Assembly: GCA_020184695.1 (NCBI GenBank)
Contig: JAANOX010000058.1
Span: 1-30,345 of the forward strand
Direction: 5' to 3'
DNA from: Histomonas meleagridis 2922-C6/04-290x
Taxonomy: Eukaryota > Protista > Parabasalia
Length of the DNA: 30,345 nucleotides
How positions within the stretch are numbered: the first letter of the stretch is position 1; each line of letters begins with the position of its first letter. Position numbers and translations under genes: made by a program. Positions 5,594 through 24,939 of the stretch are shown piece after piece. The notes below the pieces were generated by a model that did not search any database, was not told where the DNA came from, and worked only from the letters and a program-made list of their open reading frames with translations.

Positions 5594-6419
5594 TAAATAA
5601 TATAAAAATTGATTAAGTCATTTTTTTATAAATGACTGAGGAGCTTTCCTAGCTCATTCCTTTTTATGGCATTTGCGTGAGAGTGGCGGACGTCCCCTAG
5701 TTTTTTCTTCATCGTCTTTCGGTCTTGGAAACATTTCGGACGGAGACATTAATTCTTCTTGATCAGAATCAATGAAGCATTGCCTCAATTCTTCATAGGG
5801 TACTGCAGGAAACTTTTTCACTCGTCTATCTTTGCTCATTAGTTTGAAGACATAGTCGAAACCTAAACAGAACTCTAGCCTTCATTATGCTGAATACTTT
5901 TTTACTTCTTTCTCATAACTAATAATATATGCTTTAACGAGGTAAAATATTTTGTTTCCACTTTCAACAGTACTACTTTGGCTTCCACCGGGGGGCACTA
6001 TGTCCAAATTATCCCATTGTGCCACGTTACCAAAAACACAAACTGGACTTATGTTATTCTCAGATATTATGGTTGATTTGCTGGATACCTTTCGTTCACC
6101 CTCGTTCTCGATGCAATCATTCCTTTGCATGTTATCCAGTGAAGTCAATTGAATGCATACAATTTTGATATAATCTTACATGGCCAGGCTTTGATAGATA
6201 TAAAATAAAAACCATTTATTTTTCAAAGTTACGCTTAAAAACCGTTAAGCATTTCGGTACTTTTCACTTTTTGAATGACGATAGAACTGTATATTCAAAA
6301 GCAAAAAAATTCAGAATAACGATACAAAATAACGATTGCACTTTATATTTATTTATAATAGTTGTTAACGTCTCATTTTTCATATGTGGTCTCGGGAACT
6401 TTTCGACATAAGTGATAGT

Positions 6420-8152
6420 TTAATTAGGATTTAATTTAAATTTAGTAGTACCTAATAATAAATTAAATTCGATTTCATTATCATCATATAAAGAACGATA
6501 CAATTTCATGATACCATCATCATAATCAAGATTCGCATGGATATATCTAGTATCAGTAGGTATACCTATTGCCATATTCATAAAACTCATACCACCATCA
6601 TTATATAATAGTTTATCGATATAGGTTTTCTTCATGATGAAGTAGCTTTCAACTGCGCAGTTGAAATCGCTTCTATCATCATCACTAGTAAAATCGAAAT
6701 GAAATTGCCCTAAATTATTACCTATTAATTTTCTATTATATTTAGCCTCGAAGGCTGTTTCTAATTTAGGTAAATCCGATTTTACTATATGCATTCAGTC
6801 TGTATCTCGATAAAAGATTTTACAGCCAATGTCATATGCTAAGCACATCACTTCGTTCATGATTCTTTTTGACATGCTTAATACTTGAACGCCTAATAAT
6901 GATAAGTTAAAATGCTTATCTATAGGACGTTTTATATTGAAGGATTCTATATCAGAATCTTCAATTTTTATGCGTTCAATTATACGGAAGTGATTTTTAG
7001 AGGCGTAGTTATCAGCTTCATCGCCTTTCTTTAAATACTTCCATTCTTTGTTGATAGGCTTTTCTATCGTTTTGCCGTAGCAGCTATTCATAATTAATTT
7101 ATATATTTGTTGGAGAGGGTTATTTTGTCGTTTATATTCCACCCGTTTTTGGAATATTTCTTTGATTACATTTTGAATGGTGGGATCATAACCCTCATCC
7201 CAATAATAGCCTCTCACTATTTGGAATCGTATATTATGATATACTATAAGATCTTCCAAGGCTATATTGTCGACGACCATAGTGACTGGATTTTCTTCAC
7301 TTATGTTATTGTCGACATTAAGGTTTAAACCATTAATCTTTTGAAGTTTAAGTAATTTAAATTTAATTGATCTTCTTGAATAACTTTCGGTGGACCGTTA
7401 ATAACACTTATACGAGCCATAGCGGAGGGATATAATGATACGGCGTCAAAGTCACATAATTCTTCTTTGACATGCCACTTTTTGTTGTATGCAGTCATGC
7501 ATCGACCTCCATAAACTGCTCTTGATAAAAAGTGTCTAACGTGACCACCTACTTGAAATAAATTTTGATTAACTGAATAAACTTTGTTTGTAAATACAGC
7601 ATTGGCTAAAGAAGAAATAGATAAATAATTAAAAGGTGAAATATTAAATGATTGTTGAAAACCAATGCAGAATCTGTTAAACCCTTCCCGTAATATAGTA
7701 ACGTCTTGACGACAATAAAATATCGCATATTCCCACATGTTAAAAGTGGCTTCATCTATGCGACAATTAGGGATGTTATTGATATTCGTAAAGAATTCAA
7801 CATATTTGTCTTCATCCCATGGTTTGTCTTTGTAAATACCTGCTTCATCGATTAACCCTACCCCAGATTTTAATCGTTCTAAGGTGTAATGACGGTAGGG
7901 GAATAATTCTTTTTCGATTCCTTCAATACCAAACATTGAAGGTAATAATTTAAGTTTGCAGGTAAGAATTGGTAAAGTATCTTCGAAATAAATTAATTTG
8001 TTATTGAATTGAACGTCCATTGATAATACTTTTGTACCCTTAATTGTGGATCTTATTATTCCAAATTTAGCAATAAATTTAGAATCATAAGCTAAATTAT
8101 GGAAATAACAAGTTGAGTTATTTGGTAAGTAATTTGATAATTTAAATCCACA
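6420..8152 (-). pseudogene. Maverick/Polinton protein-primed DNA polymerase B, C-terminal part, frameshifted and truncated upstream at the Tc1-like element
   Basis: Exonuclease motifs YFHNLAYD and YCRQDV; KELFPY; AVYGGRC; motif A DFDAVSLYPSAM; motif B KLIMNSCYGK; motif C FYRDTD(S) split by a frameshift at 6795. Second frameshift near 7330. Confidence 0.9.
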
Positions 8153-8204
8153 ATAAGGGCCTTTAAATAAACTTGTGAAAATAAATCGGCATTGAGGAAA
8201 CTCT

Positions 8205-9438
8205 ATGAATTTTTTGAATACAGACCGTTTATTATTAGGGATAAACAAGGTCGAGAACATAATCAACCTTCACAAACAAGGATTCAGCCAAAAACAAATA
8301 GCAGACATACTGCATGTTGGAACTCATCGAGTTGGTGATACAATTCGACAGTTTACTTCAACGAATGAAATTACAAAAGAATCAAAACGTGGAAGGCCTC
8401 AAGTAATAAATAATCAAATAAAAGAATATATCGAAATTAAAACACTTCAAGACGCATCATTAACATCAGTTAAATTATCACAACAAATAGAAGATATTTT
8501 TCATCAATCAATTTCATTACAATATGTCTCAAAAATTAGAAACGAAATGAGATTTCAGTATCGACCTCCTAAAACAGAACAGCTTTTAAACTAAGAACAG
8601 ATTAATGGAAGAAAAAAATTTTGCTCAAAAATGTTAACACAGACACAATTTTCGGATAAATTTGCCTTTTCGGACGAATGTAAATTATTTATTAGGTAAA
8701 GACAATCGATGGGTGTGGGTAAGAAAAAAAGATTATACTCCAAATTCAATATCAAGAAATGTAAAATTTCCCCAGTCAATTATGATTTTTGGGGTAATTT
8801 CATGTAACTATAAGAGCAAACTTGTAGTAATTCAAAAATCTGTGAAGAGTGAGTAGTTGCTCTGAGCAATATATAGAAAATATGATTAAATATGATTTCA
8901 TCAATGGGATGAATGAACTTCGTGAAAAATTAGATTGGGTGTACATGAAGGACGGAGCTAGGTGCCACACATCTGTTGATTCTATTGATTGGCTGGAGGA
9001 GCGACTCGATGTGATTACTGATTGGCCACCCAACTCCATCGACTTAAATCCCATAGAATTACTATGGGCAATAATGAAGCGTATTGTAGCTGAACAAATG
9101 CCGAGCACTGTAGAGGAGCTTAAAAAACTGCTTGAAAAAAGTTTGAATTAACTTGACATGGAATTAATTAACAAGCTTTGTTCGGGTTTCGTCGACCGTT
9201 TACGCCTCTGCTTGGAAATGGAGGGGCAGTCGATTTCAAGATTCTTAGGATTAGCGAGAGATTCAAAAGAGGCTATTCTAAAAACTATACGCGATGGAAA
9301 TTGATTTCCCAACATATAAACAAATAAGATCCGATTTCATGCAAAAATAGATGGTACACATGTGTAAAAAAGAAGCAGCCAGAAATACTGGAAAAAAAAT
9401 TAAAAAATTTATTGATGAAAAGGTACTCTCCAACCTAA
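8205..9438 (+). mobile_element. Tc1-like (IS630-Tc1-mariner) DD34E transposase pseudogene with a C-terminal Myb-like extension
   Basis: N-terminal HTH (GFSQKQIADILHVGTHRV), GRP and YRPPK. Catalytic FSDE, KDGA and WPPNSIDLNPIELLW with 34 residues between the second D and E. In-frame stop at 8592-8594 and several frameshifts. Confidence 0.9.
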
Positions 9439-11279
9439 TATCAGAATTTGAATACCTTGTTTTCAAAGAGTGAAAATGCCTTTCAATCATGCGTGATTTT
9501 TTGAATAGCATTGAAAAAATCGCATTCGAAATATTTTTGTGAGAAAATATTCTGTCTCAAAATTGATTTATATGTTTTACATTTTTCGCCATAAAAATTT
9601 CTAAAGATTTATAAAATGCCTTCCAACGGATATTACATTCATCCTTTATCATTATTCCTAAAACCCATTATAAAAAATAATAAAAACTTGTGAAAATTGC
9701 ATTGCACGTGATTAAAACGAAATGCTTTAAATCGTAAATTTTCTCCATTAAAATCTTTAACACTTGAATTGAAATAAATTAATTTTAGATAATCATTGGG
9801 ATTAGTTAGATGAAAATATAAATTATTCGTACAATAAATTTCACTTATAGAACCAATAGAATTATTAATATCATTTTCATATAATATTCAGTTGGTATAT
9901 ATTTCATAACAACCCCTCATATCATAACTTTAAGTTAATAAAAAATATTATTTTTTATATAAGTTGTATGTACTAATTTAACCGATTAAAGTAAACTAAT
10001 TCCTTTTTGGTGAAGAAAAAAAAATAAATTTAAATTTTGTTACTATAGTATATATGAAGTGTGCAAAAAGACCTGATCCTACCCTTTTTTTTGATGAATA
10101 AAAAAATATATATTAACTATATACTTTTATTTAAAGGAGTGGTCTTCTTGATTCCTAGTCACTTATTAAAGTATTTTTTTCTTTAGTACCAATCTAGTTA
10201 AAGCTCTTAAAAAGTAGCAATTCCAAACATAAAAGCAATTTCATTTTTTAAATCATATTATGAATTTTTCTCCATACTCTTTCAATTTTCCTTAAATATT
10301 TCGATAAATAAAATATTATACTAACTTTAATCTAATGAATAATATAAGTAAAAATTTCTTTTAATGTTATTATATTTAGATTTTTGAATTATATATTTTC
10401 AATATGAATGATACAGTTAAATCTATATCCCTTTATTTATTTCATATGGATCCATTTTTTATTTATTTATTTATTTTGATAATCAATATTTTCGAGAAAT
10501 TTTAATTTATTTTGATTAATTAAGTATTATATATTAAATTTGTATTTATGATTTAATCTGTATATCCATATCATTTATGTCTATTTCATAAAATAATTAA
10601 ACATTATTTTTTACATTGAAATTTCTAATATATTATCATTTTCATTTTAATACTTTGTTTCATAAATATATTAATAAAATTATATATAGAAAATATTTTT
10701 TACCCCCTACTATTATTAAAAATTTATATTTATACTAGAAAATAATTAATGAATTATAAAAATTGTAAATTTCAATATAAATTAAAGATTAAGAATTACA
10801 AAAAAGACATCTAAGAGTTACCTTTGAAATGTATTAATGTTGAACTATACTTTTTCTTAATCAATAAACAGATTTTAATAATGGAATTTTTACTGAATAT
10901 TGTTTATCATCAAAATTATTTATTAGTCTTTCATTGACATTTTTCTATTTAATTATATATATATATTGACCAATTTTAAATAATTTATCAAATATTGAGT
11001 AATGCATATTTTTTGATAAATCTCTGGAATATATATAAAGAAGGAAAACATTAGAACTTATGTTTGGTGAACATATATCGAGGAAGTCTAGAAACAAATC
11101 ATTAATAAAAAGGCAATAATTATTAATTTTTTTCTATGGCTTTTTTAACTTTTTTCTTATTATACTTTCATAAATGACTAAGCACATTCATATCGATTAT
11201 TAATAATTAAATGAATATTTTTGATTACCTTAAGGAATGGGAAAAATTCATACTTTCATGAATACTTTTATGGTGCATG

Positions 11280-11541
11280 CACCCATGGTCTACGCCATGG
11301 GTGGAAAAAAAATTTAGCATTGTAACTGAATATAATTTAATTTTTTGTTTCAGAATAAACAAAATTAAGTTATGTGTTGGCATATTTTGATTAAGGTACG
11401 CATAACATTCTAAAAAATGAGGAAAAAAAATACATGTAACATTCACTCGAATATAAACACAAGATATATATTGAAAAAGTCATTTTGTGTGACTCAGAAA
11501 AATGACTTTTTCAATGATCAAAATATGCCAACACATAACTT
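11280..11541. repeat. Cluster of inverted repeats: GC-rich hairpin, 25-bp IR pair and nested 17-bp hairpin (MITE-like or element end)
   Basis: cacccatgg/ccatgggtg (11280-11303). aagttatgtgttggcatattttgat (11367-11391) is the exact reverse complement of 11517-11541. attgaaaaagtcatttt (11470-11486) pairs with 11499-11515. Confidence 0.8.
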
Positions 11542-11684
11542 TTTAATTTTCGATTACTTCACTCTTTTTCGAAAAATAAATAAATAAACTATAACTGCAC
11601 TTGCATTAGTGATAAATTAAGCAAACTTCAATAATAACACATATATGGAATAAAAAAAATTCGTTTGAAATGATTTATTATTCA

Positions 11685-14604
11685 TTATTCAGATTCTTCT
11701 TTCAACCTATAAATAACAACTTTGTTTCTTATGGATGAAAGCAAACTTTCATTGCATTTTATTCTCTTAGATGTGATTGGTTGACCATTTTTGCACATTT
11801 CAAGAATAGCCATCCATTTAGCGTAAAATCTTTCTGATTTTTTGGCCGTGAGCTTGATTTCTGCTTTAGCCCATCTTTTTTTGATCTCATTTTCCAGTGT
11901 ATCATCAAAAATGAGAGCTGTAGAATCAAAGTTTGCCATTTCCGTTTTTTGGAAGCCAAAATATGCTTCAACGACCTCATTCAAATGGTGGCTATATGGT
12001 ACTGTTGGGATTTCATTGATTTTCATATCTTTAATTGCCCTTTGAGTTTCGGATGTCTTATGGATCTTACAGTTATCGTGAATTATACAATTCTTATTAC
12101 TACCTGAGCATACTGCCCTTCTAATAAGATCTGTTACTTCACGGATAAATACAGCATAATCGTTACCATTTATGCTTCCTCTGAACCACCTACTTATAAC
12201 ACCGAACCCTGGGATGACACAGGAGAGAATTGAGAGTTTATGTTGTGCAAGGATTCCTTCTACAGCAGGAACTACTCCAATTAATGCTCTATCTTTAATT
12301 GTATTTGGTAACAGTGTTACAGCAGCCTCATCTACGAACATAAATATAACATTTGATAATCGTGCAATTTCCAAAACTATACTTGCCCAAAAAGCTCTTA
12401 GTATCATTAGTCCTATTGTATTTCTGGCCGGAGGGGAAAATTTGATTGATTTAGCACGGAAATGCAACTGTGATATCAATCGATTTACAGATCTAACTGA
12501 AATGCCACTACCTTTTTCGAATATACCTGATCTAAGGTTGAGATATTCTGTTCTTTGAATCCCAGTCCATTGAGGTTACTCCATAAGTGTTGTTATGACA
12601 CATAGGATTACTTCCTCTGTAATCTTACAACCTTTCCTATTTTTAGGCGTTAAATTTGATACTTTGCGTGTTTTCTTTGAATTTGCTATCCATGCTTTTA
12701 ATGTTGATTTACTGGGTTTCCGATTACCTAACATTTGCTGTGCGACAGCTTGCCAATTTTCGATAAGTTTTGCGTCGCTTGAATACATTCTTCTGTTATC
12801 TTTGTAAAATTGAATAAATTTTTCTTGAATGTTATATTTTTGTTCTCTTTTGAATGTGATGTTGAAATTTTACTTTATTTTTTCTTCATTGATATATTTT
12901 TTTATCTCTTGATATAGGTCATCTATATCAAGGATTATACAACGATCTCTCCAATCATATGAAAATTCATTATGATTGTCATCAAGAAAATCTGTTTTGT
13001 CTTCATTTGTTTGTGCATTCTGTTTCATGTATTGTATTTTGGTAATCAATTTATCGGCCAAAATATCGTCTATTTCAGTTTTATCATTTGTGTCTTCAAT
13101 TAATATTTCAGAAGAAGAATATTCTGGATTTTCTTCTTCTTCTTCAATATTTAATGATCGAAAATTAAAAAGATTATTTTGTAAAAACTCTCGAAATTCT
13201 TCAACACTAATTGAAGATTTGTGATAAACTACGAAGCTCTCATATAATTGAATTAATATTTGAGTCTGTTCGGAAATTTGAATATCATCATCAAATACTC
13301 TGAATGGCGTGTTGAATAATTTTCGAAGTGTTTCATTCCTCCTATTAATGCACCCAATATTGCTAGTTTTCCATTCAGCACTTGCAAAAACTTTTTGATT
13401 TGCTTTTATGAAACTAGTGAACAATTTCCATTCAGGCTCAGATGGTGTATTAATCACACTTGTGGGAATTATACCACCATTTACGTATAATCTTCCACAA
13501 AGGGAAGGGAAATTATTTTCAATATTAATCGAATTAATAGGTTCCGTATGAGGCACAAGTATATAATTTTGTGACTCCGGTGTATTCATTATTACTTGTT
13601 CCTGATGTAGAGGTATATATTTGCTATTGGTTAATGAAAATACTGGTGCATTAAATTGAAGTTCATCTTCTGACGTGTTTTCATAAACAAGAAAACATAC
13701 ATTACTTATTATTGTATCTTCAATCGACACAATAATACTTATTCTTTGAGTTCTAGCTGTAAGGCCAATAACTTCGATTTTTTTATCATCACAAATTACC
13801 CAATGTCCGAGAACATATTTTAATGTGATCCAATGTCCTGAATCAATTTCTTTTCCAATATGACAACAGATACTACGTAAGCGATAAAAGGGACATCCAT
13901 CAGATGTTTCGTTTGAATATTGCCTAAGATCAAGCTATGTTGGAATTGTTACACTTTGATTCGATTTACTACTATTAATTATACGATTGACATTTATACA
14001 TTAAGATTATTGGAAAAACAACAACATTTGTTGTCATTATCGAATTATTTTCAGTTTTGTCTTCTGCAAAATACTGCTTAATAGATCCTTCTATTAATCC
14101 ACCTTTTATTCCCAATGTAATCATTGATAAATTTTCCTGTAAAATTTCAATTGATCTTGTACTACTTTTAACAACCTTATCAATCTTAATCACGAATAAA
14201 TTCTTAACATTATCACTAATTATTGAGCTAATAACTACAACATAGAAATCTGAAACGTCCTGTTGCTCTAATACACCTCTGTATTGGGGTAAACATGAAT
14301 AACCCATCCAACCATTCCAATTTTTTATAATATCAGTTAGTTTGATAAATGCATCTTTAGTTTTAGTTGATTGAAGTGACTGGGTTATTTGGTATAATAG
14401 TTTGCTTGTATTATCAAGGTGATCATCATATCTAATAATCTCGTTCAAAAGAGGTTGAATACATTAAACGGCTTGCATCCAAGATATAATAAAACAGTAA
14501 TTGCCTTGGTTTGCATAGCCTTTGAATAGAGAAATAAATGAATCATCATATTCGGTTTGGTTAATGCGTTCCAAAGATCTGAGAATTTCGATTAAAGAAT
14601 TCAT
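11685..14604 (-). pseudogene. USP (peptidase C19) deubiquitinase domain fused to an IS630-Tc1-mariner DDE transposase, about 972 aa when repaired
   Basis: ATG at 14604. Cys box GYANQGNYCFIISWMQAV, EQQDVSDF, P-IIL-CINVNR..VTIPT*LDLRQY, His box YRLRSICCHIGKEIDSGHW..WVICDD..VCFLVY, acidic linker, then FVDEA / HDNCKIH / PYSHHLNEVVEAYFG. Stops at 14464-6, 13935-7, 12870-2 and 12576-8; one +1 frameshift near 14000. Confidence 0.85.
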
Positions 14605-14611
14605 CAAAAAA

Positions 14612-14616
14612 AGTGA
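14612..14616 (-). promoter_or_regulatory. Trichomonad-type initiator (Inr, TCACT) upstream of the USP-transposase ATG
   Basis: Minus strand reads cgaTCACTttttttgATG. This matches the trichomonad Inr consensus TCA(+1)YW with a 10-nt leader. Confidence 0.6.
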
Positions 14617-14670
14617 TCGAAATTATCTTGTCACTTTTCAAATACAATAACTTACTTCTCTCTATTTATC

Positions 14671-16876
<2,206 letters not shown>

Positions 16877-16954
16877 TTGACAAAATTAGTTTTAATTATT
16901 ATATTTATAAAAATAAATAAGGTAAAATTAAGATTTTTTATTTCCTAATTGAAG

Positions 16955-17147
16955 TGGACAGAAATTTCCGGCTAATGGACAATTTTTTCGGCTCGCGGCC
17001 GTTTACTTCAAATGCCGATCATTTCGTGGTCAGAAATTTCCGGCCGATGGACAGATTTTTCGGCTCGCGGCCGTTTACTCTAAACAACGGTTATTTTTTG
17101 GACAGAAATTTCCGGCCGATGGACAGATTTTCGTGTCCGGTACTGTA
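16955..17147. repeat. About 2.6 copies of a 72-bp GC-richer repeat ending in a Tc1/mariner-like terminus (..GTCCGGTACTG|TA)
   Basis: Units start at 16955, 17027 and 17099, each with two TGGACAG-like subrepeats 21 bp apart. The reverse complement of the end reads TA-CAGTACCGGACACG. Confidence 0.75.
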
Positions 17148-17295
17148 ATTCATATTCCAATTTTTATTCATGATTTGTTTTTCAATATTGTCAATCTTAT
17201 TTTTCTTGATCTTTTAAGTATTCAAAATATAGCTTGATTTATATTATTGTGCATAAATTAGAATTAACAAGTATAAATGATAAAAAACATATGTA

Positions 17296-17520: not shown

Positions 17521-17958
17521 GTTAGATGCTGTGAGTGTTGGTGTGTGTCTGAGTTTATATATTGGTTCCTATTGATGTCTGAAAGAATATGATCAAGTTG
17601 GATATCATAGGTTGCAAACGCATGTTGAAATTGAGGTGTTAATCGAGAATAAATAAAGATATGAAAAAAATATGAAAATAAATATGAGAATGAAATAGTT
17701 ATAAGAATAAAATAAATATATAAGAATAAAATAAATATGAGAATAAAATAGATATAAGAAAAAAATAGATACGAGAATATATGTGAATACATATCCATTC
17801 AATATTATCTTATGTTCACTCTTGTTAATTCATGTTTATTCATATTTTCTCTTTTTTATTCTGTTTATTATGTTTCCTCATTCATATTTATTTGGTGTGG
17901 CGGTTAGAACTGTAACAGGAAAATAGCACTTTTTTACCGATGGCGTTTTGCCATTCAA

Positions 17959-20900
17959 ATGCTCACGAACGAGAACATTCTGATTCCCATTCTTCAAATA
18001 TTCACAAATAATACAGAACCAATACCACAGTCGACAAACTTATTTAAAATTGTAGATTCTTCTTCAATTCCAATTCTTGATTCTCAAATTATTGAAACAT
18101 TTCAAAATAATTTTGCCGAAAATAATGATTATTTTTCATCTCTTAAAATCTTTGATGGAATTTTTCATTATGATTCCAAAGTTATTAGTTCTATTCTTGA
18201 TCACAAAATTCAAACCGAAGAACTTGTTAAATATGGGAAACCAGTTATTTTCTCCAATGCGATAGGATTTCTTCTTTCTGATCCCATTGAATTCAACGAT
18301 TTCCAAGTAGAGTTATTAAATGTATTACGCATTATATTTCTTTTAACATATGATGACTATGAAATATCATATCCATTATATCTATTAACCTTAGAGCATG
18401 GAATCAATATATCTGCCGAGAATTTTTCAATTGATACAATTCTATTTATCTGCCAGAATTTTTTATTTCATCGGCAACCATCAGTCAAATCTCTTTATAT
18501 AATTTTTGAACTTTTTAAAAAATCACCATCATGTCAACTGAATAAACCACAAATCATGTCGACTATAACAAATCTTGAGAACACATTAATTGAAGCAAAC
18601 ATTGACTTTGATGACACTGAAATTTGTAATTTTCTTTTAACTAAACTAAATGAATTAGATGATAGTGATTTCCGTTTAATTTCTTTATTAGCCAAATCGC
18701 GAAGTAGTAAAAATGTACAAAATTTATATTCAAAAATTCCATCATTAATATTTGAATTATCGAACTCATTAAGGATTAAAATGAATTTTTCATCATCAGT
18801 TCATTTTCAATATTCCAAATTTTCATCACGAAACAATGATATTGATTGTGAATTTGAGATAAATGATACAATAGAAAATATATCACCAAAAACTGATTGG
18901 CCCAAAAGTTTATTTCCACAAGAATATTTATCAAAACTTGATTCTATTTTAAACATTTTTAAATATTATTTAAATAATGAATATTATGATTCTTTTGTTG
19001 AATCATTTAATGATTATTTAAAACGATCAAAAACGAATTTATTTTTATCATTTTTATACATATTATCAAAAATTGAAGTTAATTTTACATTAAAAGATAA
19101 TTCTTGTTCATATTTGTTTCATAGTGATTTATTTAATCCAAATGTTACTATTTATTTCCCAAATAAAGATTTCGAATTAATTTCAGCACTTAGAAATTGT
19201 ATTATAATGATCGTATTTAAACATAATCCAAAATATATGAATATATTTTTTCAAAACTGTAAAGAATTTCCATTTTTGTTTAGTGAATTACTTGTTAGAA
19301 GTTTATCTTATGATATAACTTGTTTATTTACAAATAATTTTTTGAATGCGTTTTGGAATATTGATATTTGTTTAAGGAATATTTATAAAGAAATGAAAGA
19401 TAATAAAAATATTTGTGTTTCTGCTCGATCTTCACTTTATTATTTTTTAACAACTCTTTTAAAAATTCCTTCGCTACCTTTTAAAACTATTAATATGAAA
19501 GAAATTTCTGTCGAAGTATTTTCGATTGTATCTGAACGAGCTTTTAAACAAAAGTTTTTTTGTGACATTGAAAATATTTTATTAAAAGAACAAAATAAAG
19601 AAAATATTGTTAATTCTGGATTACAACAAATTAGTAATTTATTAATAATTTTTGATTATTCTTCTTATTTGTCACCATTACAAAATATGGTTATTTCTTT
19701 ATTAAATTGTGTTATTAGTTCTATTTTAAAGAATAATTCAATTGCTTTTGCAGCTACACGTTTAATTAATCCTTTTTTATTATTTTTAAAACATTTTCAT
19801 TCACAAGAATTATTATCAAAAATTATTGAATTGATATCATTAACTCCATTTGATAATACATATCAATTATCTACATATATAATATCTAATGAAAAGAAAT
19901 TAAGTCAATTAATTATACGAAAATTATTTTCATTAGTATCATCAACATTATTAGAAATTAATTTAACCAAATTTTATATTAAGAAGCCATTTGTATTTCA
20001 AATGATATTATCAATTTATTCATATTATGAACTTACAGAAGAATTATTAAAAATCATTGATAAATTATGTGATTTTTCAAATTATAATAAAATCCAACTA
20101 CATGAAGGAGAATTTGATTTATTAATTCTTGATATATTATTAAATTATCCAGATGATTTTTGTTTTAGAGGTTTTCAAATATATAAAGTTGATAAAATTA
20201 ATATTGATTTAATTTGTTTAATATTTGCTAAAATTACTACAAATATTTCAAGTATTGTAGTAGCACAAAGATTAATGAAAGTTTTATTTCATTCCAAAAT
20301 TTCGGATAAATTTATAAAATTTTTTATGCCAATTTCTGAAACATTTAATAAATATCAAACTGTATGTTATCCTTTAGGTATTCAACAAGTATTTTTTGAA
20401 GCTGATAACTTAAGTTTTTTAGATTTATTTCATGGTTCAACTATAGGTTTTTGGTGTTATCCTGAAGAAGAATCTTTTAATGAATTAAATATAACATCAA
20501 CAATTTTAAGAATTTCTTCTTTACTTGAAATTTTTATTCAAGGAAATCAATTAACTTTAAGTGCTAATAAAACAAAATTTAACTTGACTTCAATTAAATT
20601 TAATCAATGGAATCCTATAATTATTAATTTTAAAGCTTCTGGTGAATCAATTTTAAGAACAGAAATTTATTCTGATTTAGAAAATCCAACAACAATTGAT
20701 ATTAATGTTAAAAATATTCAAGAAGATATCGCATTATTCTTTGGCAATTTCGAATTACATAAAACAGATAATACAAAACTTTTATTATCTGTGTATCAAT
20801 TATCATTTTTTGCATTCTTTCCTGATATGTTAACTCAAAAAGAAAGAGAACAATTTATAAATGATGGACATATAATTACAACATCAATTAATCAAAGACC

Positions 20901-23900
20901 ACTTTATATGTATCCTGAAAATCAACTTAATCCACCAATTAATAAAATAACTTTATTTATAGATCCTTCAGGTTGTTTTCAACAATTACCAAATTTATTA
21001 CATATTTTTAGAGGTGAATATCCTTTGGATTGTATTGGACCTTTATTCAGGAACTTCCAAAGTTTTAAAAATAATTTGTTATTATTAGATTGTATTGAAC
21101 AATTATTTTTAACTAAAATTAATGTCATATTTGAAATGATAACTTATTTATTACCTAATAGTGATCCTAAAGTATTAACTTATGATCTTTATTTAAACTT
21201 TTTTAATGACGCAAAGTTTTCTTCTAATCAAGAATATTTATTTGAATATATATTATTAAATTTTGATATTTGGATTAAAGCTTCAAATAATGAATTATTA
21301 AAAATATTAGAACATTGGTCAACTGAATTATTTGATACATTTACAAGTTATTTTTTGTCTGATAGTTTTATACAAACTTTTCTATCGAATATTCGAATTT
21401 ATTTTTATATAGATCCAATTGAAACTAATATTATAACAAAATATAAACGTGATCCGAATTTAAACATTAATAAATGTATAGCTTTTTTAGTAAAAATATT
21501 AATTCGTAGAGCTTCATTTCAATTTACACATTCTGATTCATTAGTTTATTTGACTAATTTAGTAAAATGTAAAGATTCAAAATTAGCATTACAATTCCTT
21601 GAAGTAATTCCTTCATTATTTCCATATTCTAATTCAAATATATTAAGTAATTTATTACATTTAATTGATTTACAAAAAAATCCAACATTTTTGCCACCAT
21701 TAATTCATGCTTTTTATATATTAAGTGGGGATTCATTTTATATTAATTCATTAATTTTAAGTTATCAAATCCCAGAAAGTTTTACTTATGATTTATTTAA
21801 AGATGAATTAGATCAATTTATTGAATTATTTTCTATATCTATTATAGCTGCATTAAATTCTAATCAAAGTTTACAAGATGAATTAGCTAAAAAATTATTT
21901 AATTTTTCTACAAAAAATCTTTATAGAGTTAGAATTAAAAAATGTGAATTTTGGTATATTTGGCCAATACTTTTTGCAGTACAAATTCAAGAAATTTCTT
22001 CAATTATTGTCTGCCAATCTTTAGCTAATATTGTATCAGAAGATTTTGAACTTTCTTTATTAAAATCAATTATGACATTTTTAGATTTAATTGAAATTAA
22101 TACAAGTTTTGATGTGCATAATTTTGGTATTTTATTTTTAAAGTTTGTATTTCAACAACTTAAATTTCAAGATGTACAAGAATTTGATGAAGGTTTAAAT
22201 GAAATTGGATTTAATGCATTATTTACTAAATGTGTATCAGAAACACATTCATTTGAAATATTAAAAGAATATTCATTATCAGTTTTTAATAAGAAACTTA
22301 AAGTACATCATAAACTTAATAGTGTAAAAAATTTTGTTGAACTTAAAGCTTGTTTTGCATTTAGTTTAATGAAATTTACACATTATTTACAATTAAAGAA
22401 ATTTAAATCATTTTCAGAAACAGAACGTGAATTTTATCAACTTTATTTAAAAATTATACCTAAAGAGCCTCGAATGGTATTTTCACAACATATATTTCAA
22501 GGTTGTTCAAGTTATCCTAATGCTAATGAACAAGAACGATTAAATATAATTTTATCATTATATAATGAAGATGAATCATTTACAGAATATATGAAATTAC
22601 TTGATATTAATACTGCTAAAAATGTTATAAAATTAAATAATTTCTTTAAGTTTCTTGAAGAACCTTTACAAAATGTTAATACAATTCATCTTAATGATCC
22701 AGTTTTAATTGTAGTTAAAAATAAAAATCATCAAGGAAAAATAGCTAAATTAAAATGGCAAAAAATTATTCAACAATTTGTACATCCACGTGCTTTATTT
22801 GATTTAAATTGTTTTGTTTATAAACGCGATTTTTATTTTTCTAATTCATTTGTATCAAATCGTTTAAAGCGTTCATTAAATATCCCTAAAACTCGAATTA
22901 AATGTTTTCCAAATCCTCCTACAAATGTAATTCTCACTAAGAAATGTCAACAAATAAAAATATCAGAAACTATACCATGTGAATTTACACTTACTACGAA
23001 ATCAATTATCATAAAATTTGAATATAAAGTTAAAAATATATCAAATGAAAACATTAAATATATCTTATATAGAAATAGATATCAAAAACTTACTGCTTTA
23101 GAATTCTTTATGACTAATAATCGATCAATATTATTAGATTTCTCACCTATATTATGTGATGATATAATGAAATATTTTGAAAAAGATTATTTCCCTAATT
23201 TATTAATATTAGGGAATTCTAATTTCTTAAGTTTAATTGAAGAATCAAATATAATTAAAGAATGGCGTAAAATGGATATATCAAGTTTTGATTTATTATT
23301 AAAATTAAATATATTATGCGGTCGTTCTTATCATGATCCAGAGAATTATATAATATTTCCTTGGATAATATTTGGTCCTAATAAAGAATTACGAGATTTA
23401 AATTTACCAATGGCAGCACAAACCCAAACAAAAATTGATTATTATCGACAAATGTTAATAATCAATAAAAATAATCCGGATGGTGCATATGTATTTGGTT
23501 CTGCACCTTCAAGTGCTATGTTATTAGCATATTATTTAGTTCGACAAAATCCTTTTACTGATTTACATTTACAAATTCATGATGGACATCTTGATAGTTT
23601 AGAACGATTATTTCGATCAGTTGATAATTATTTTGCAGGGTTAAATCAAAGTGATGAATCACGTGAATCTATACCTGAGTTTTATACAATGCCTGAAGCA
23701 TTTATCCAATTTGATGATGAAAGTATATTAAAATCATTAATCATTCCTAATTGGGCTAATAATAATATTTATGATTATATTTATTTAAGTAAGAAAATAT
23801 TAGAATCATTTTATGTATCTGAACATTTAAATCAATGGATTGATTTACTTTTCGGTATATGTCAAACAGGTGAAGAAGCTATTAAAAGATGTAATTTGTT

Positions 23901-24939
23901 TTTACCTTATTTATATAATAATGTATGGGAAAAACAACCACCTGAAAAAACAGAATTAATTTTAACAATGTTAAAAAATTTGGGATCTTTACCTAAACAA
24001 ATATTTAGATATGAATTCCCTCAAAGATATCCTTTTAGATTCGAATCTTCTTATTATGGTACTTATAAAGATTTCGATATTGGTTCAATATCTGAAGGAT
24101 TTGCATTTTCTTCGACTAAATCAATTTTATATTTAATATTTAAGAATTATGATGGAGGATTTTATTCATATAAAGTGAACATTGAAACAAAAGAATTACA
24201 ATTAATAAATAATCGTTCATTAGCTGTAGAACCTTCAGCTAAAACTATATTATATAATCAAGTTTTATATGTATTCGATAGTGATAAAAGTTTAATATAT
24301 TTAGTACAACCGAATTCTATTAGAACTATACATCAAAAATTTTCGACAATCGATTTTATTAATGTAGGAAATGATAATACAATTTATACCGCTTCAAAAA
24401 TGGGAATTTTTAAGATTTGGAAAACAAATCGATTCGGTGAAACTAAAACTTTACATAGAGTTATGAGCGATTCATTAAAATCCGCTTATGTTTCACAAGA
24501 ATTCGGTATCATAGTTTGTTCAACTTTCGATGGCTATATCGAAATTTATTCAATAACGAATCAAAGATATATAAATTCTTGTTTTTTGGATAACTCAATC
24601 GGAATAAAAGTTATTGTTACATACGAATTAGGATTTATTGTGGTTAAAACTGTAGACGAAATTTGGCTGTTCACTGTAAACGGGTTCTTAATTAAAAGAG
24701 CTAAAGTAGAAATGGAAATTAATGATTGGATAACTTGGAAAAACTTCGATGGATTCGATATGATAGCGTTCTTCGATTATGATGGAAGATTATACGTGTT
24801 CGAGGCTTATTATCCTGAAAATATTAAATTGTTGACTTCTTTCCAACAAAATATAGTGGGAATATCTTATATAGTACAAATAGATAAATTGGTGGCAATT
24901 ACTTCAGAACCTTCGGTTCATATCTTAAAGTATAACTAA
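17959..24939 (+). CDS. Beige/BEACH domain protein (PH-BEACH-WD40 C-terminus), 2326 aa
   Basis: Uninterrupted ORF with BEACH motifs GRSYHDPENYIIFPWI, YYLVRQNPFTDLHLQIHDGHLD..ERLF, IPEFY and SEHLNQWIDLLFG. A PH-like segment precedes them and WD40-like repeats follow. Confidence 0.95.
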   Translation: MLTNENILIPILQIFTNNTEPIPQSTNLFKIVDSSSIPILDSQIIETFQNNFAENNDYFSSLKIFDGIFHYDSKVISSILDHKIQTEELVKYGKPVIFSNAIGFLLSDPIEFNDFQVELLNVLRIIFLLTYDDYEISYPLYLLTLEHGINISAENFSIDTILFICQNFLFHRQPSVKSLYIIFELFKKSPSCQLNKPQIMSTITNLENTLIEANIDFDDTEICNFLLTKLNELDDSDFRLISLLAKSRSSKNVQNLYSKIPSLIFELSNSLRIKMNFSSSVHFQYSKFSSRNNDIDCEFEINDTIENISPKTDWPKSLFPQEYLSKLDSILNIFKYYLNNEYYDSFVESFNDYLKRSKTNLFLSFLYILSKIEVNFTLKDNSCSYLFHSDLFNPNVTIYFPNKDFELISALRNCIIMIVFKHNPKYMNIFFQNCKEFPFLFSELLVRSLSYDITCLFTNNFLNAFWNIDICLRNIYKEMKDNKNICVSARSSLYYFLTTLLKIPSLPFKTINMKEISVEVFSIVSERAFKQKFFCDIENILLKEQNKENIVNSGLQQISNLLIIFDYSSYLSPLQNMVISLLNCVISSILKNNSIAFAATRLINPFLLFLKHFHSQELLSKIIELISLTPFDNTYQLSTYIISNEKKLSQLIIRKLFSLVSSTLLEINLTKFYIKKPFVFQMILSIYSYYELTEELLKIIDKLCDFSNYNKIQLHEGEFDLLILDILLNYPDDFCFRGFQIYKVDKINIDLICLIFAKITTNISSIVVAQRLMKVLFHSKISDKFIKFFMPISETFNKYQTVCYPLGIQQVFFEADNLSFLDLFHGSTIGFWCYPEEESFNELNITSTILRISSLLEIFIQGNQLTLSANKTKFNLTSIKFNQWNPIIINFKASGESILRTEIYSDLENPTTIDINVKNIQEDIALFFGNFELHKTDNTKLLLSVYQLSFFAFFPDMLTQKEREQFINDGHIITTSINQRPLYMYPENQLNPPINKITLFIDPSGCFQQLPNLLHIFRGEYPLDCIGPLFRNFQSFKNNLLLLDCIEQLFLTKINVIFEMITYLLPNSDPKVLTYDLYLNFFNDAKFSSNQEYLFEYILLNFDIWIKASNNELLKILEHWSTELFDTFTSYFLSDSFIQTFLSNIRIYFYIDPIETNIITKYKRDPNLNINKCIAFLVKILIRRASFQFTHSDSLVYLTNLVKCKDSKLALQFLEVIPSLFPYSNSNILSNLLHLIDLQKNPTFLPPLIHAFYILSGDSFYINSLILSYQIPESFTYDLFKDELDQFIELFSISIIAALNSNQSLQDELAKKLFNFSTKNLYRVRIKKCEFWYIWPILFAVQIQEISSIIVCQSLANIVSEDFELSLLKSIMTFLDLIEINTSFDVHNFGILFLKFVFQQLKFQDVQEFDEGLNEIGFNALFTKCVSETHSFEILKEYSLSVFNKKLKVHHKLNSVKNFVELKACFAFSLMKFTHYLQLKKFKSFSETEREFYQLYLKIIPKEPRMVFSQHIFQGCSSYPNANEQERLNIILSLYNEDESFTEYMKLLDINTAKNVIKLNNFFKFLEEPLQNVNTIHLNDPVLIVVKNKNHQGKIAKLKWQKIIQQFVHPRALFDLNCFVYKRDFYFSNSFVSNRLKRSLNIPKTRIKCFPNPPTNVILTKKCQQIKISETIPCEFTLTTKSIIIKFEYKVKNISNENIKYILYRNRYQKLTALEFFMTNNRSILLDFSPILCDDIMKYFEKDYFPNLLILGNSNFLSLIEESNIIKEWRKMDISSFDLLLKLNILCGRSYHDPENYIIFPWIIFGPNKELRDLNLPMAAQTQTKIDYYRQMLIINKNNPDGAYVFGSAPSSAMLLAYYLVRQNPFTDLHLQIHDGHLDSLERLFRSVDNYFAGLNQSDESRESIPEFYTMPEAFIQFDDESILKSLIIPNWANNNIYDYIYLSKKILESFYVSEHLNQWIDLLFGICQTGEEAIKRCNLFLPYLYNNVWEKQPPEKTELILTMLKNLGSLPKQIFRYEFPQRYPFRFESSYYGTYKDFDIGSISEGFAFSSTKSILYLIFKNYDGGFYSYKVNIETKELQLINNRSLAVEPSAKTILYNQVLYVFDSDKSLIYLVQPNSIRTIHQKFSTIDFINVGNDNTIYTASKMGIFKIWKTNRFGETKTLHRVMSDSLKSAYVSQEFGIIVCSTFDGYIEIYSITNQRYINSCFLDNSIGIKVIVTYELGFIVVKTVDEIWLFTVNGFLIKRAKVEMEINDWITWKNFDGFDMIAFFDYDGRLYVFEAYYPENIKLLTSFQQNIVGISYIVQIDKLVAITSEPSVHILKYN

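Follow-up and report, generated by a model that had tools for sequence, protein, structure and literature searches.

A probable fusion of a C19 ubiquitin-specific protease to an IS630/Tc1/mariner-type transposase in a decayed DNA transposon of Histomonas meleagridis

We analysed a 30,345-nucleotide stretch of the Histomonas meleagridis genome (contig JAANOX010000058.1 of assembly GCA_020184695.1; hereafter the window), which carries on its minus strand a broken gene whose predicted product joins a ubiquitin-specific protease (USP; peptidase family C19) to a DDE transposase. The gene runs from ATG 14604 to TAA 11687-11685 and measures 2920 nt, or 973 codons plus 1 nt; it is one gene with five breaks. 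The original prediction for this DNA had described the open reading frames (ORFs) 12870-13730, 12576-12788 and 11685-12479 as sharing a minus-strand frame, separated by single TAA codons with 81 and 96 nt of open sequence between them, and had extended that frame up to 14000 through one TAG and the upstream frame from ATG 14604 through one TAA. This description proved accurate, as did the predicted span and its count of one insertion and four nonsense codons. All comparisons of broken copies were made piecewise on the sequences as they stand, without repair or rebuilding. The parts of the gene, in the order in which it is read, are:

14467..14604, minus strand: ORF start and Cys box of the USP, with the oxyanion Asn at 14511-14509 and the catalytic Cys at 14496-14494; ends at TAA 14466-14464.
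14003..14463, minus strand: middle of the USP domain (thumb and fingers part); ends at the 1-nt insertion near 14002.
13720..14000, minus strand: C-terminal part of the USP domain, with TAG 13937-13935 and the His box (His 13835-13833, Asp 13787-13785).
12873..13719, minus strand: family-specific middle region, comprising a segment of ~65 residues ending in the conserved GKLYVxGG, then helical and acidic stretches and the motif DDNHxExxYDWxxRC; ends at TAA 12872-12870.
12579..12869, minus strand: Lys-rich linker and first helix-turn-helix (HTH)-like part of the transposase; ends at TAA 12578-12576.
11685..12575, minus strand: second HTH-like part and DDE_3 catalytic domain, with the catalytic residues D 12332-12330, D 12077-12075 and E 11969-11967; terminal TAA 11687-11685.

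The five breaks are given below with the state of a paralogous H. meleagridis copy, L002, which lies on contig WSYJ01000029.1 of assembly GCA_020186115.1:

14466-14464, minus strand: nonsense break (TAA) in the upstream frame opened by ATG 14604; also in L002.
Near 14002, minus strand: frameshift by a 1-nt insertion (an extra A); the base is absent from L002.
13937-13935, minus strand: nonsense break (TAG); L002 reads TGG there.
12872-12870, minus strand: nonsense break (TAA); L002 reads AAA there.
12578-12576, minus strand: nonsense break (TAA) between ORFs 12576-12788 and 11685-12479.

A genetic code in which TAA and TAG are read as sense, as in ciliates or diplomonads, was considered and rejected. 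The genome uses the standard code: a 2343-aa BEACH-domain ORF is free of all three stops and ends in TAA, and L002 has sense codons (TGG, AAA and TAT) at three of the four nonsense sites of the window. This BEACH/PH-BEACH domain gene (17908-24939, plus strand) is intact and adjoins the transposon described below. A scan of the window for bacterial promoters and terminators was set aside, the host being a eukaryote.

Both halves of the gene carry the residues expected of their families. The predicted motifs are all present at their places: the USP has GNYC, SGHW and CDD, and the transposase has DEA and HDN, the latter followed 35 residues later by a Glu; the USP boxes of the window read N..GNYCFIISWMQ, SGHWITLK and WVICDDKKI, and the transposase triad is spaced D-84-D-35-E, that is, DD35E. 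Piece 11688-12575 of the window matches Pfam DDE_3 (PF13358) at E=2.5e-9, with 37.6 bits against a cut-off of 28.6, and the NCBIfam IS630 model hits an intact relative at E=2.8e-13, although below its equivalog cut-off. A sequence search of the PDB with the DDE piece of the window returned nothing relevant. No Pfam HTH family was matched by the window pieces or by intact relatives; residues 583-693 of the intact relative P0025 are helical in a low-confidence AlphaFold2 model, and a KxRGK linker is conserved in the family. On the USP side, the family profile matches solved USP46/USP12 at E=2e-13 to 5e-13 with the Cys and His boxes in register. Human USP46/USP12 (PDB 5l8h, 5k16) are the best matches among solved structures, and their catalytic Cys, His and Asp align with those of the family, although only ~125-140 residues align well and the family is not known to act with a WD-repeat activator; this likeness names a fold family, not a substrate. 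In a Foldseek search of the AFDB clusters, the named matches among those listed are USPs or ubiquitinyl hydrolases, several entries being unnamed, with E-values down to 2.8e-12 and low template-modelling (TM) scores.

Evidence that the two halves belong to one protein came from relatives. An exhaustive HMMER search with piece 12873-13934 (the His box and middle region) among 1.84 billion representative proteins returned only 15 proteins. The best of them, P0010 (594 aa), is 49% identical over 353 residues and matches Pfam UCH at 1.6e-20; on its contig, L003, a DDE_3 ORF follows P0010 in the same frame, and frame 1, read from the ATG through the whole transposase, contains only two stops. By searching with P0010 and then listing cluster members we reached intact ORFs, the source being gut metagenomes. 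There are three forms: one of 990 aa (P0025 and P0028, on contigs L006 and L009-L011; PF00443 at 1.2e-20 for P0025), one of 970 aa (P0034 and P0039, on contig L008; PF00443 at 6.4e-17 for P0034) and one of 943 aa (P0047, on contig L007; PF00443 at 3.2e-19). All hold PF00443 and PF13358, both above the Pfam cut-offs, in one uninterrupted frame; intact two-domain copies, for which the original prediction had proposed a search, exist in three subfamilies. Several samples and two assemblers yielded one and the same 3612-bp contig for the 990-aa form, at 99.97-100% identity. A tblastn comparison of P0025 with the window aligned residues 5-985 colinearly in two frames, with 39% identity in the first part of the USP and 52% in the remainder.

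These comparisons bear directly on a simpler explanation, namely that the locus holds two separate genes, either adjoining or as two ORFs with a real stop at ~12870, and that the fusion is an artefact of reading through the stop. Gene callers do give two ORFs on L003, L004, L012 and L001, every broken copy breaks somewhere within P0025 residues 561-625, and three subfamilies have a stop at residues 622-623, all of which would fit two genes. However, uninterrupted ORFs of 943-990 aa cover both domains in three subfamilies, from several samples and assemblers, and where the break is a substitution the two halves keep the same frame. The stop at 12870, whose conservation would have refuted the fusion according to the original prediction, is not conserved: L002 reads AAA there, and L001 and L006-L011, like all other lineages, have an open frame at this site; nor did the domains turn out to be unlinked, since the intact ORFs hold both and inverted repeats bracket them. 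In P0025 numbering (q), the breaks of the window are stops at q46, q224, q575 and q679 plus a frameshift at ~q201; those of L002 are stops at q46, q103, q107, q113, q115 and q825 plus a frameshift at q578-586; and those of L003 are stops at q593 and q925. Only the q46 stop is common to the window and L002. Because the places of the breaks differ between copies, the ancestor was one long ORF. We conclude that the two-gene explanation, to which we give very little credence, is largely refuted by the intact ORFs.

We compared substitution levels between the intact subfamilies. The proportion of synonymous differences (pS) is saturated, at 0.62-0.87 overall and 0.62-0.81 in the USP and middle region. 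The proportion of nonsynonymous differences (pN) is 0.38-0.44 in the USP and middle region, falls to 0.25-0.34 for the HTH part and is lowest, at 0.15-0.21, for the DDE domain. Since pN is well under the saturated pS in all four regions, purifying selection has acted throughout, with the USP held more loosely than the core of the transposase. Seven residues are invariant in the family: N31, C36, H258 and D274 of the USP and D777, D862 and E898 of the transposase. Transposons capture host gene fragments, and the USP might be a passenger of this kind, without a role in transposition; its lower conservation relative to the DDE part (~40% versus 70-78% identity) would agree with that. Against a passenger, the USP is fused in frame and at the same position in at least five lineages diverged to ~40% identity, its catalytic Asn, Cys, His and Asp do not vary, and its pN lies well under pS. 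We regard a passenger as very unlikely. The invariant catalytic residues together with a pN far below pS indicate that the USP is a selected part of the transposase and no chance neighbour. As read from the alignments, these data show the fusion to be an ancestral arrangement kept by selection.

Upstream of the gene lie the 5′ end of a transposon and a long repeat tract:

16950..17147, minus strand: 5′ terminal region, consisting of TA at 17147-17146, then the terminus CAGTACCGGACACG..., then three 72-bp subrepeats (17145-16950).
17123-17112, 17051-17040 and 16979-16968, minus strand: GC-rich core of the subrepeats, TCCATYRGCCGG, one in each 72-bp subrepeat.
14670..16949, no strand: compound microsatellite of ~2.3 kb (TA/CA/TG blocks) within the element, separating the 5′ terminal region from the ORF; L002 is alike.

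Spurious ORFs of 500-760 aa arise from the microsatellite in every frame. The terminus recurs in L002 as TA followed by CAGTACCG, with unrelated sequence beyond it. At 24 of 28 positions the subrepeat motif agrees with the 5′ end of L003, a metagenomic relative, and it also resembles the inverted repeat of L008. We take the succession of TA, CAGT and GGCC-A-rich-ATCCA motifs to be the Tc1 pattern. Among the relatives, L008 and L012 have perfect terminal inverted repeats of 77 nt, and that of L009 is perfect over 30 nt; the lengths of 77 and 30 nt equal the word sizes of the assemblers, and the true repeats are at least that long. In the subfamily of L001 and L007, the inverted repeat extends over at least 245 bp at 99.2% identity. 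Of the features for which the original prediction proposed to align flanks, terminal inverted repeats surround the intact ORFs. A TA stands immediately before the CAGT terminus both in the window and in L002, whose sequences beyond it are unrelated; it was seen at one end only.

The window and L002 are 97.8% identical over 7.3 kb, and the same identity holds for a shared segment of 9.7 kb, which is 7394-17148 in the window and 4829-15382 in L002. One limit of the similarity is exactly the junction of TA and the CAGT terminus, and the other lies within a polymerase B fragment; with both versions present in the same DNA runs, this points to a transposon-bounded segmental duplication or ectopic recombination. 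Two DNA runs from 2021, seen as Logan contigs, contain window-type, L002-type and further diverged variants. They also contain an internally deleted form, in which a contig joins 12594 to 14407, skipping 1812 bp, with a TGA between; this form is a non-autonomous derivative of the element. Inside the reading frame, the window and L002 differ by 79 substitutions, of which 25% are synonymous against 20% expected at random, a proportion that identifies neutral drift of the H. meleagridis copies. We conclude that the window copy is dead: it has four nonsense codons and one frameshift, its 3′ repeat was not found, and it has drifted neutrally. Contigs from RNA libraries (depth 5-14) match 12662-13041 with 27-30 differences, and their source is a third copy, ~9% diverged, without TAA 12870. 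H. meleagridis may accordingly hold a better-preserved, weakly transcribed member of the family.

The breaks might instead be errors of sequencing or assembly in a copy that is intact and active. The 2021 assemblies are Nanopore-based (PMC8529796), the frameshifts fall in or near A-rich runs, and the window's TAG 13937-13935 was unseen in contigs of the two 2021 DNA runs, which have TGG there. Other breaks recur independently of the window assembly. TAA 14466-14464 is common to L002, which comes from an independent assembly, and independent H. meleagridis DNA runs from 2021, in their Logan contigs, have TAA 12872-12870 as well. As to the extra A near 14002, every X1 contig examined leaves the base out; in X2, contigs accounting for 918.8 of 2069.3 of the depth leave it out, and run X2 probably also holds the window's insertion. 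The substitutions between the window and L002 are spread neutrally, and a 3′ inverted repeat was not found, which also speak against an intact, active copy. We consider the error explanation extremely improbable.

A further alternative is that the fusion was domesticated, that is, co-opted by the host for a cellular role, and that the window is a decayed paralog of such a gene. Purifying selection on the USP, the middle region and the DDE part between lineages would be expected of a host gene. The family is also rare: the HMMER matches number 15 per 1.84 billion representatives, and neither JGI metagenomes (two scans, with N- and C-terminal patterns) nor IMG/VR yielded relatives. Nevertheless, perfect 77-nt inverted repeats bracket intact ORFs, multiple diverged subfamilies and many broken copies co-occur within the same metagenome samples, an internal-deletion derivative is present in the DNA runs, and the H. 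meleagridis copies are dead and evolve neutrally. Domestication is, in our judgement, highly improbable.

Several observations weigh against reading the locus as a decayed transposon with a USP-transposase fusion. Of the two Pfam families that the original prediction had expected, DDE_3 was matched by the window piece and UCH in the intact relatives, whereas the window's own USP fragments gave no UCH match at E<=1. They failed to match because they are too short and too decayed, and the C19 assignment of the window therefore rests on the motifs and on colinear homology to intact relatives. AlphaFold2 models have low confidence, both for full-length P0025 (alignment of 36 rows; mean predicted local distance difference test (pLDDT) score 47.3) and for the middle region (14 rows; pLDDT 49). 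At the 3′ side of the window, no inverted repeat was found with a repeat finder, with patterns allowing 2-3 mismatches or by local alignment against 6000-11690, nor was a target-site duplication established for the window. Since 9.7 kb downstream of the terminus are common to the window and L002, these are not simply two independent insertions. Finally, the RNA contigs are sparse, may be carry-over of DNA and are no sign of activity. Weighing these points against the intact ORFs, the conserved residues and the bracketing repeats, we hold with high confidence that 14604-11685 of the window is the decayed gene of an IS630/Tc1/mariner-type transposon family in which a C19 USP is fused to the DDE transposase, and that the interval from 17147 to ~11600 (minus strand) is very probably a decayed Tc1/IS630-type cut-and-paste DNA transposon of H. 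meleagridis. This confidence covers the architecture and the transposon identity, and not the role of the USP.

The protein encoded by the family is a single chain of ~940-990 residues in four parts: an N-terminal USP (peptidase C19) domain of ~310 aa with an intact Cys/His/Asp triad, a family-specific middle of ~280 aa, a Lys-rich linker with two helix-turn-helix-like segments, and a DD35E DDE_3 catalytic domain. We infer that the USP would be an active isopeptidase tethered to the transposase and acting in cis or locally. The original prediction had proposed that the enzyme would deubiquitinate itself or its target chromatin and thereby evade degradation or silencing. Three uses for the USP can be proposed. 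The USP might strip ubiquitin from the transposase or transpososome and so lengthen its life, which we rank as the most likely use and to which we give about an even chance. It might instead strip ubiquitin from chromatin or repair factors at the site of excision or integration, a possible but clearly less favoured use. Ranked last, and doubtful, is processing of the polyprotein by the USP at a conserved GG motif.

That motif lies in the middle region, which corresponds to P0025 residues ~310-590. The region matched no Pfam family, PDB sequence or fold; scores in the ESM Atlas were all <0.75, and Foldseek against the PDB gave nothing below E=0.5. A weak match to S100-A9 (E=0.0015) was taken as compositional. 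The motif GKLYVxGG stands ~65 residues after the USP domain, its LYVxGG part being P0025 residues 370-375 and the GG of the window lying at 13478-13473. It is found in seven of nine lineages, the exceptions being P0011, from the broken copy L004, and P0014, a fragment of 167 aa. It recalls the Leu-x-aliphatic-x-Gly-Gly tail cleaved by USPs, and a low-confidence AlphaFold model places elements in the order beta-beta-alpha-beta-beta-beta ahead of it. Self-processing by the USP at this motif would be a speculative idea only.

A second feature of the family is the stop at P0025 residues 622-623, which occurs in three subfamilies within one or two aligned codons (the equivalent in the window is ~12735-12725). 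The mutations are TTA to TAA at L012:2485-2487, also present in L013; AAG to TAG at L001:532-534, the sole break of L001; and TGG to TGA at L005:2111-2113. L012 differs from intact L009 at 2 of 3672 nt, L001 is 99.45% identical to intact L007, and L005 is 99.15% identical to intact L008, so that the stop-bearing copies are otherwise 99.2-99.95% identical to intact ones, and the three types of mutation differ. These stops were gained independently in the three subfamilies. A mutational bias was considered for the clustered breaks and set aside: the junction has 1.2x the nonsense-prone codons and ~4x the A/T runs, which explains the frameshifts and not the three stops. The chance of three stops at one site is ~1e-4, by a rough, post-hoc estimate.

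The stop splits the protein into a USP-plus-middle part of ~621 aa and an HTH2-plus-DDE part of ~345 aa. To judge from the recurrence of the stop in the three subfamilies, selection may have favoured the truncated form as a regulator, or the split could be a functional two-protein version of the system. Such a USP-plus-middle protein could be a counterpart of the KP repressor of P elements that carries a deubiquitinase. We think it unlikely that the family is a self-regulating two-module system in which the USP would cleave its own polyprotein after LYVxGG, truncated USP-plus-middle forms would be positively selected regulators, or both.

The family resembles Tc1 and other IS630-Tc1-mariner (ITm) elements, including Tc1 with its DD34E triad and bacterial IS630, in its DDE_3 domain and IS630 profile match, in the context of the catalytic Glu (E-x-x-[WF]-G-x-x-K), in the TA and CAGT terminus followed by subrepeats that look like binding sites, and in the terminal inverted repeats of intact relatives. 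It differs from them in being DD35E rather than DD34E, in a protein ~2.5x longer owing to an N-terminal extension of ~590 aa (USP and middle), and in its long inverted repeats (at least 77 bp, reaching at least 245 bp). No solved Mos1 or Sleeping Beauty-type structure matched significantly in sequence.

A fusion of related design has been reported from another parabasalid: T. vaginalis XP_001314237.1 combines transposase_11 (IS5-like) with Peptidase C19 (Bao, Kapitonov, Jurka 2010, PMC2836005), and the same authors proposed an involvement of ubiquitin pathways in transposition or repair (PMC2836005). Compared by description only, that protein likewise occurs in a parabasalid and joins a C19 hydrolase to a DDE transposase, but its transposase is of the IS5/transposase_11 type, and ours of the DDE_3/IS630-Tc1 type. 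PF01609 (IS5-like, DDE_Tnp_1) found no match in the window or in intact relatives, in which PF13358 is the only transposase domain. UCH is also among the domains stably carried by some Helentron clades (HELIANO 2024, PMC11417382), and proteases borne by transposable elements include Ulp1/OTU in Ginger1, Ulp1 in the Mutator-like KI-MULEs and OTU in Helentrons (PMC2836005, PMC11417382). The present family shares with Ginger1, KI-MULEs and Helentrons a cysteine isopeptidase of the ubiquitin/SUMO system encoded by, or fused to, a transposition protein. In most of those cases, however, the protease is of another clan and family than USP/C19. Their proteases stand at the C terminus of an integrase-like protein or beside a Rep/helicase, whereas here the protease is N-terminal on an ITm transposase. 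In the literature searched, we found no paper on a USP fused to an IS630/Tc1/mariner transposase, and the H. meleagridis genome paper (PMC8529796) is silent on the fusion. The novelty claimed by the original prediction for the combination of ITm and C19 is narrowed by the earlier C19-IS5-like fusion (PMC2836005) and Helentron UCH (PMC11417382).

The family extends the C19-IS5 observation in Trichomonas to a second transposase superfamily, which suggests repeated recruitment of USP domains by parabasalid transposons. Through the fusion, a transposon would gain a connection to the host ubiquitin system of a kind that is little known. To our knowledge, what transposons gain from carrying ubiquitin/SUMO-system proteases has never been settled, and the family offers a compact test case of 3.3-3.8 kb, in which a single ORF lies between clear inverted repeats, a textbook USP triad is fused directly to a Tc1/IS630-type transposase, and intact copies exist in nature. 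For H. meleagridis, the window copy is a fossil, with nothing to tie it to virulence.

Other repeats and remnants lie downstream of the gene. Just 3′ of the ORF is a perfect 25-nt inverted repeat pair (11367-11391 and 11517-11541, with 125 nt between the arms), within which sits a perfect 17-nt hairpin (11470-11515), at the place where the 3′ end of the element is expected; the pair, 11367-11541, may be an insertion resembling a miniature inverted-repeat transposable element (MITE). Further along, a broken protein-primed type-B DNA polymerase occupies 6420-8266 on the minus strand (Pfam DNA_pol_B_2, E=1.3e-32 and 1.8e-11) and is probably a Maverick/Polinton remnant; this region is 91.9% identical to L002, versus 97.8% in the adjoining stretch. 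Inside the polymerase region is the remnant of a second, unrelated Tc1-like transposase (8205-9151, plus strand), with HTH_23 and DDE_3 and a DD34E spacing.

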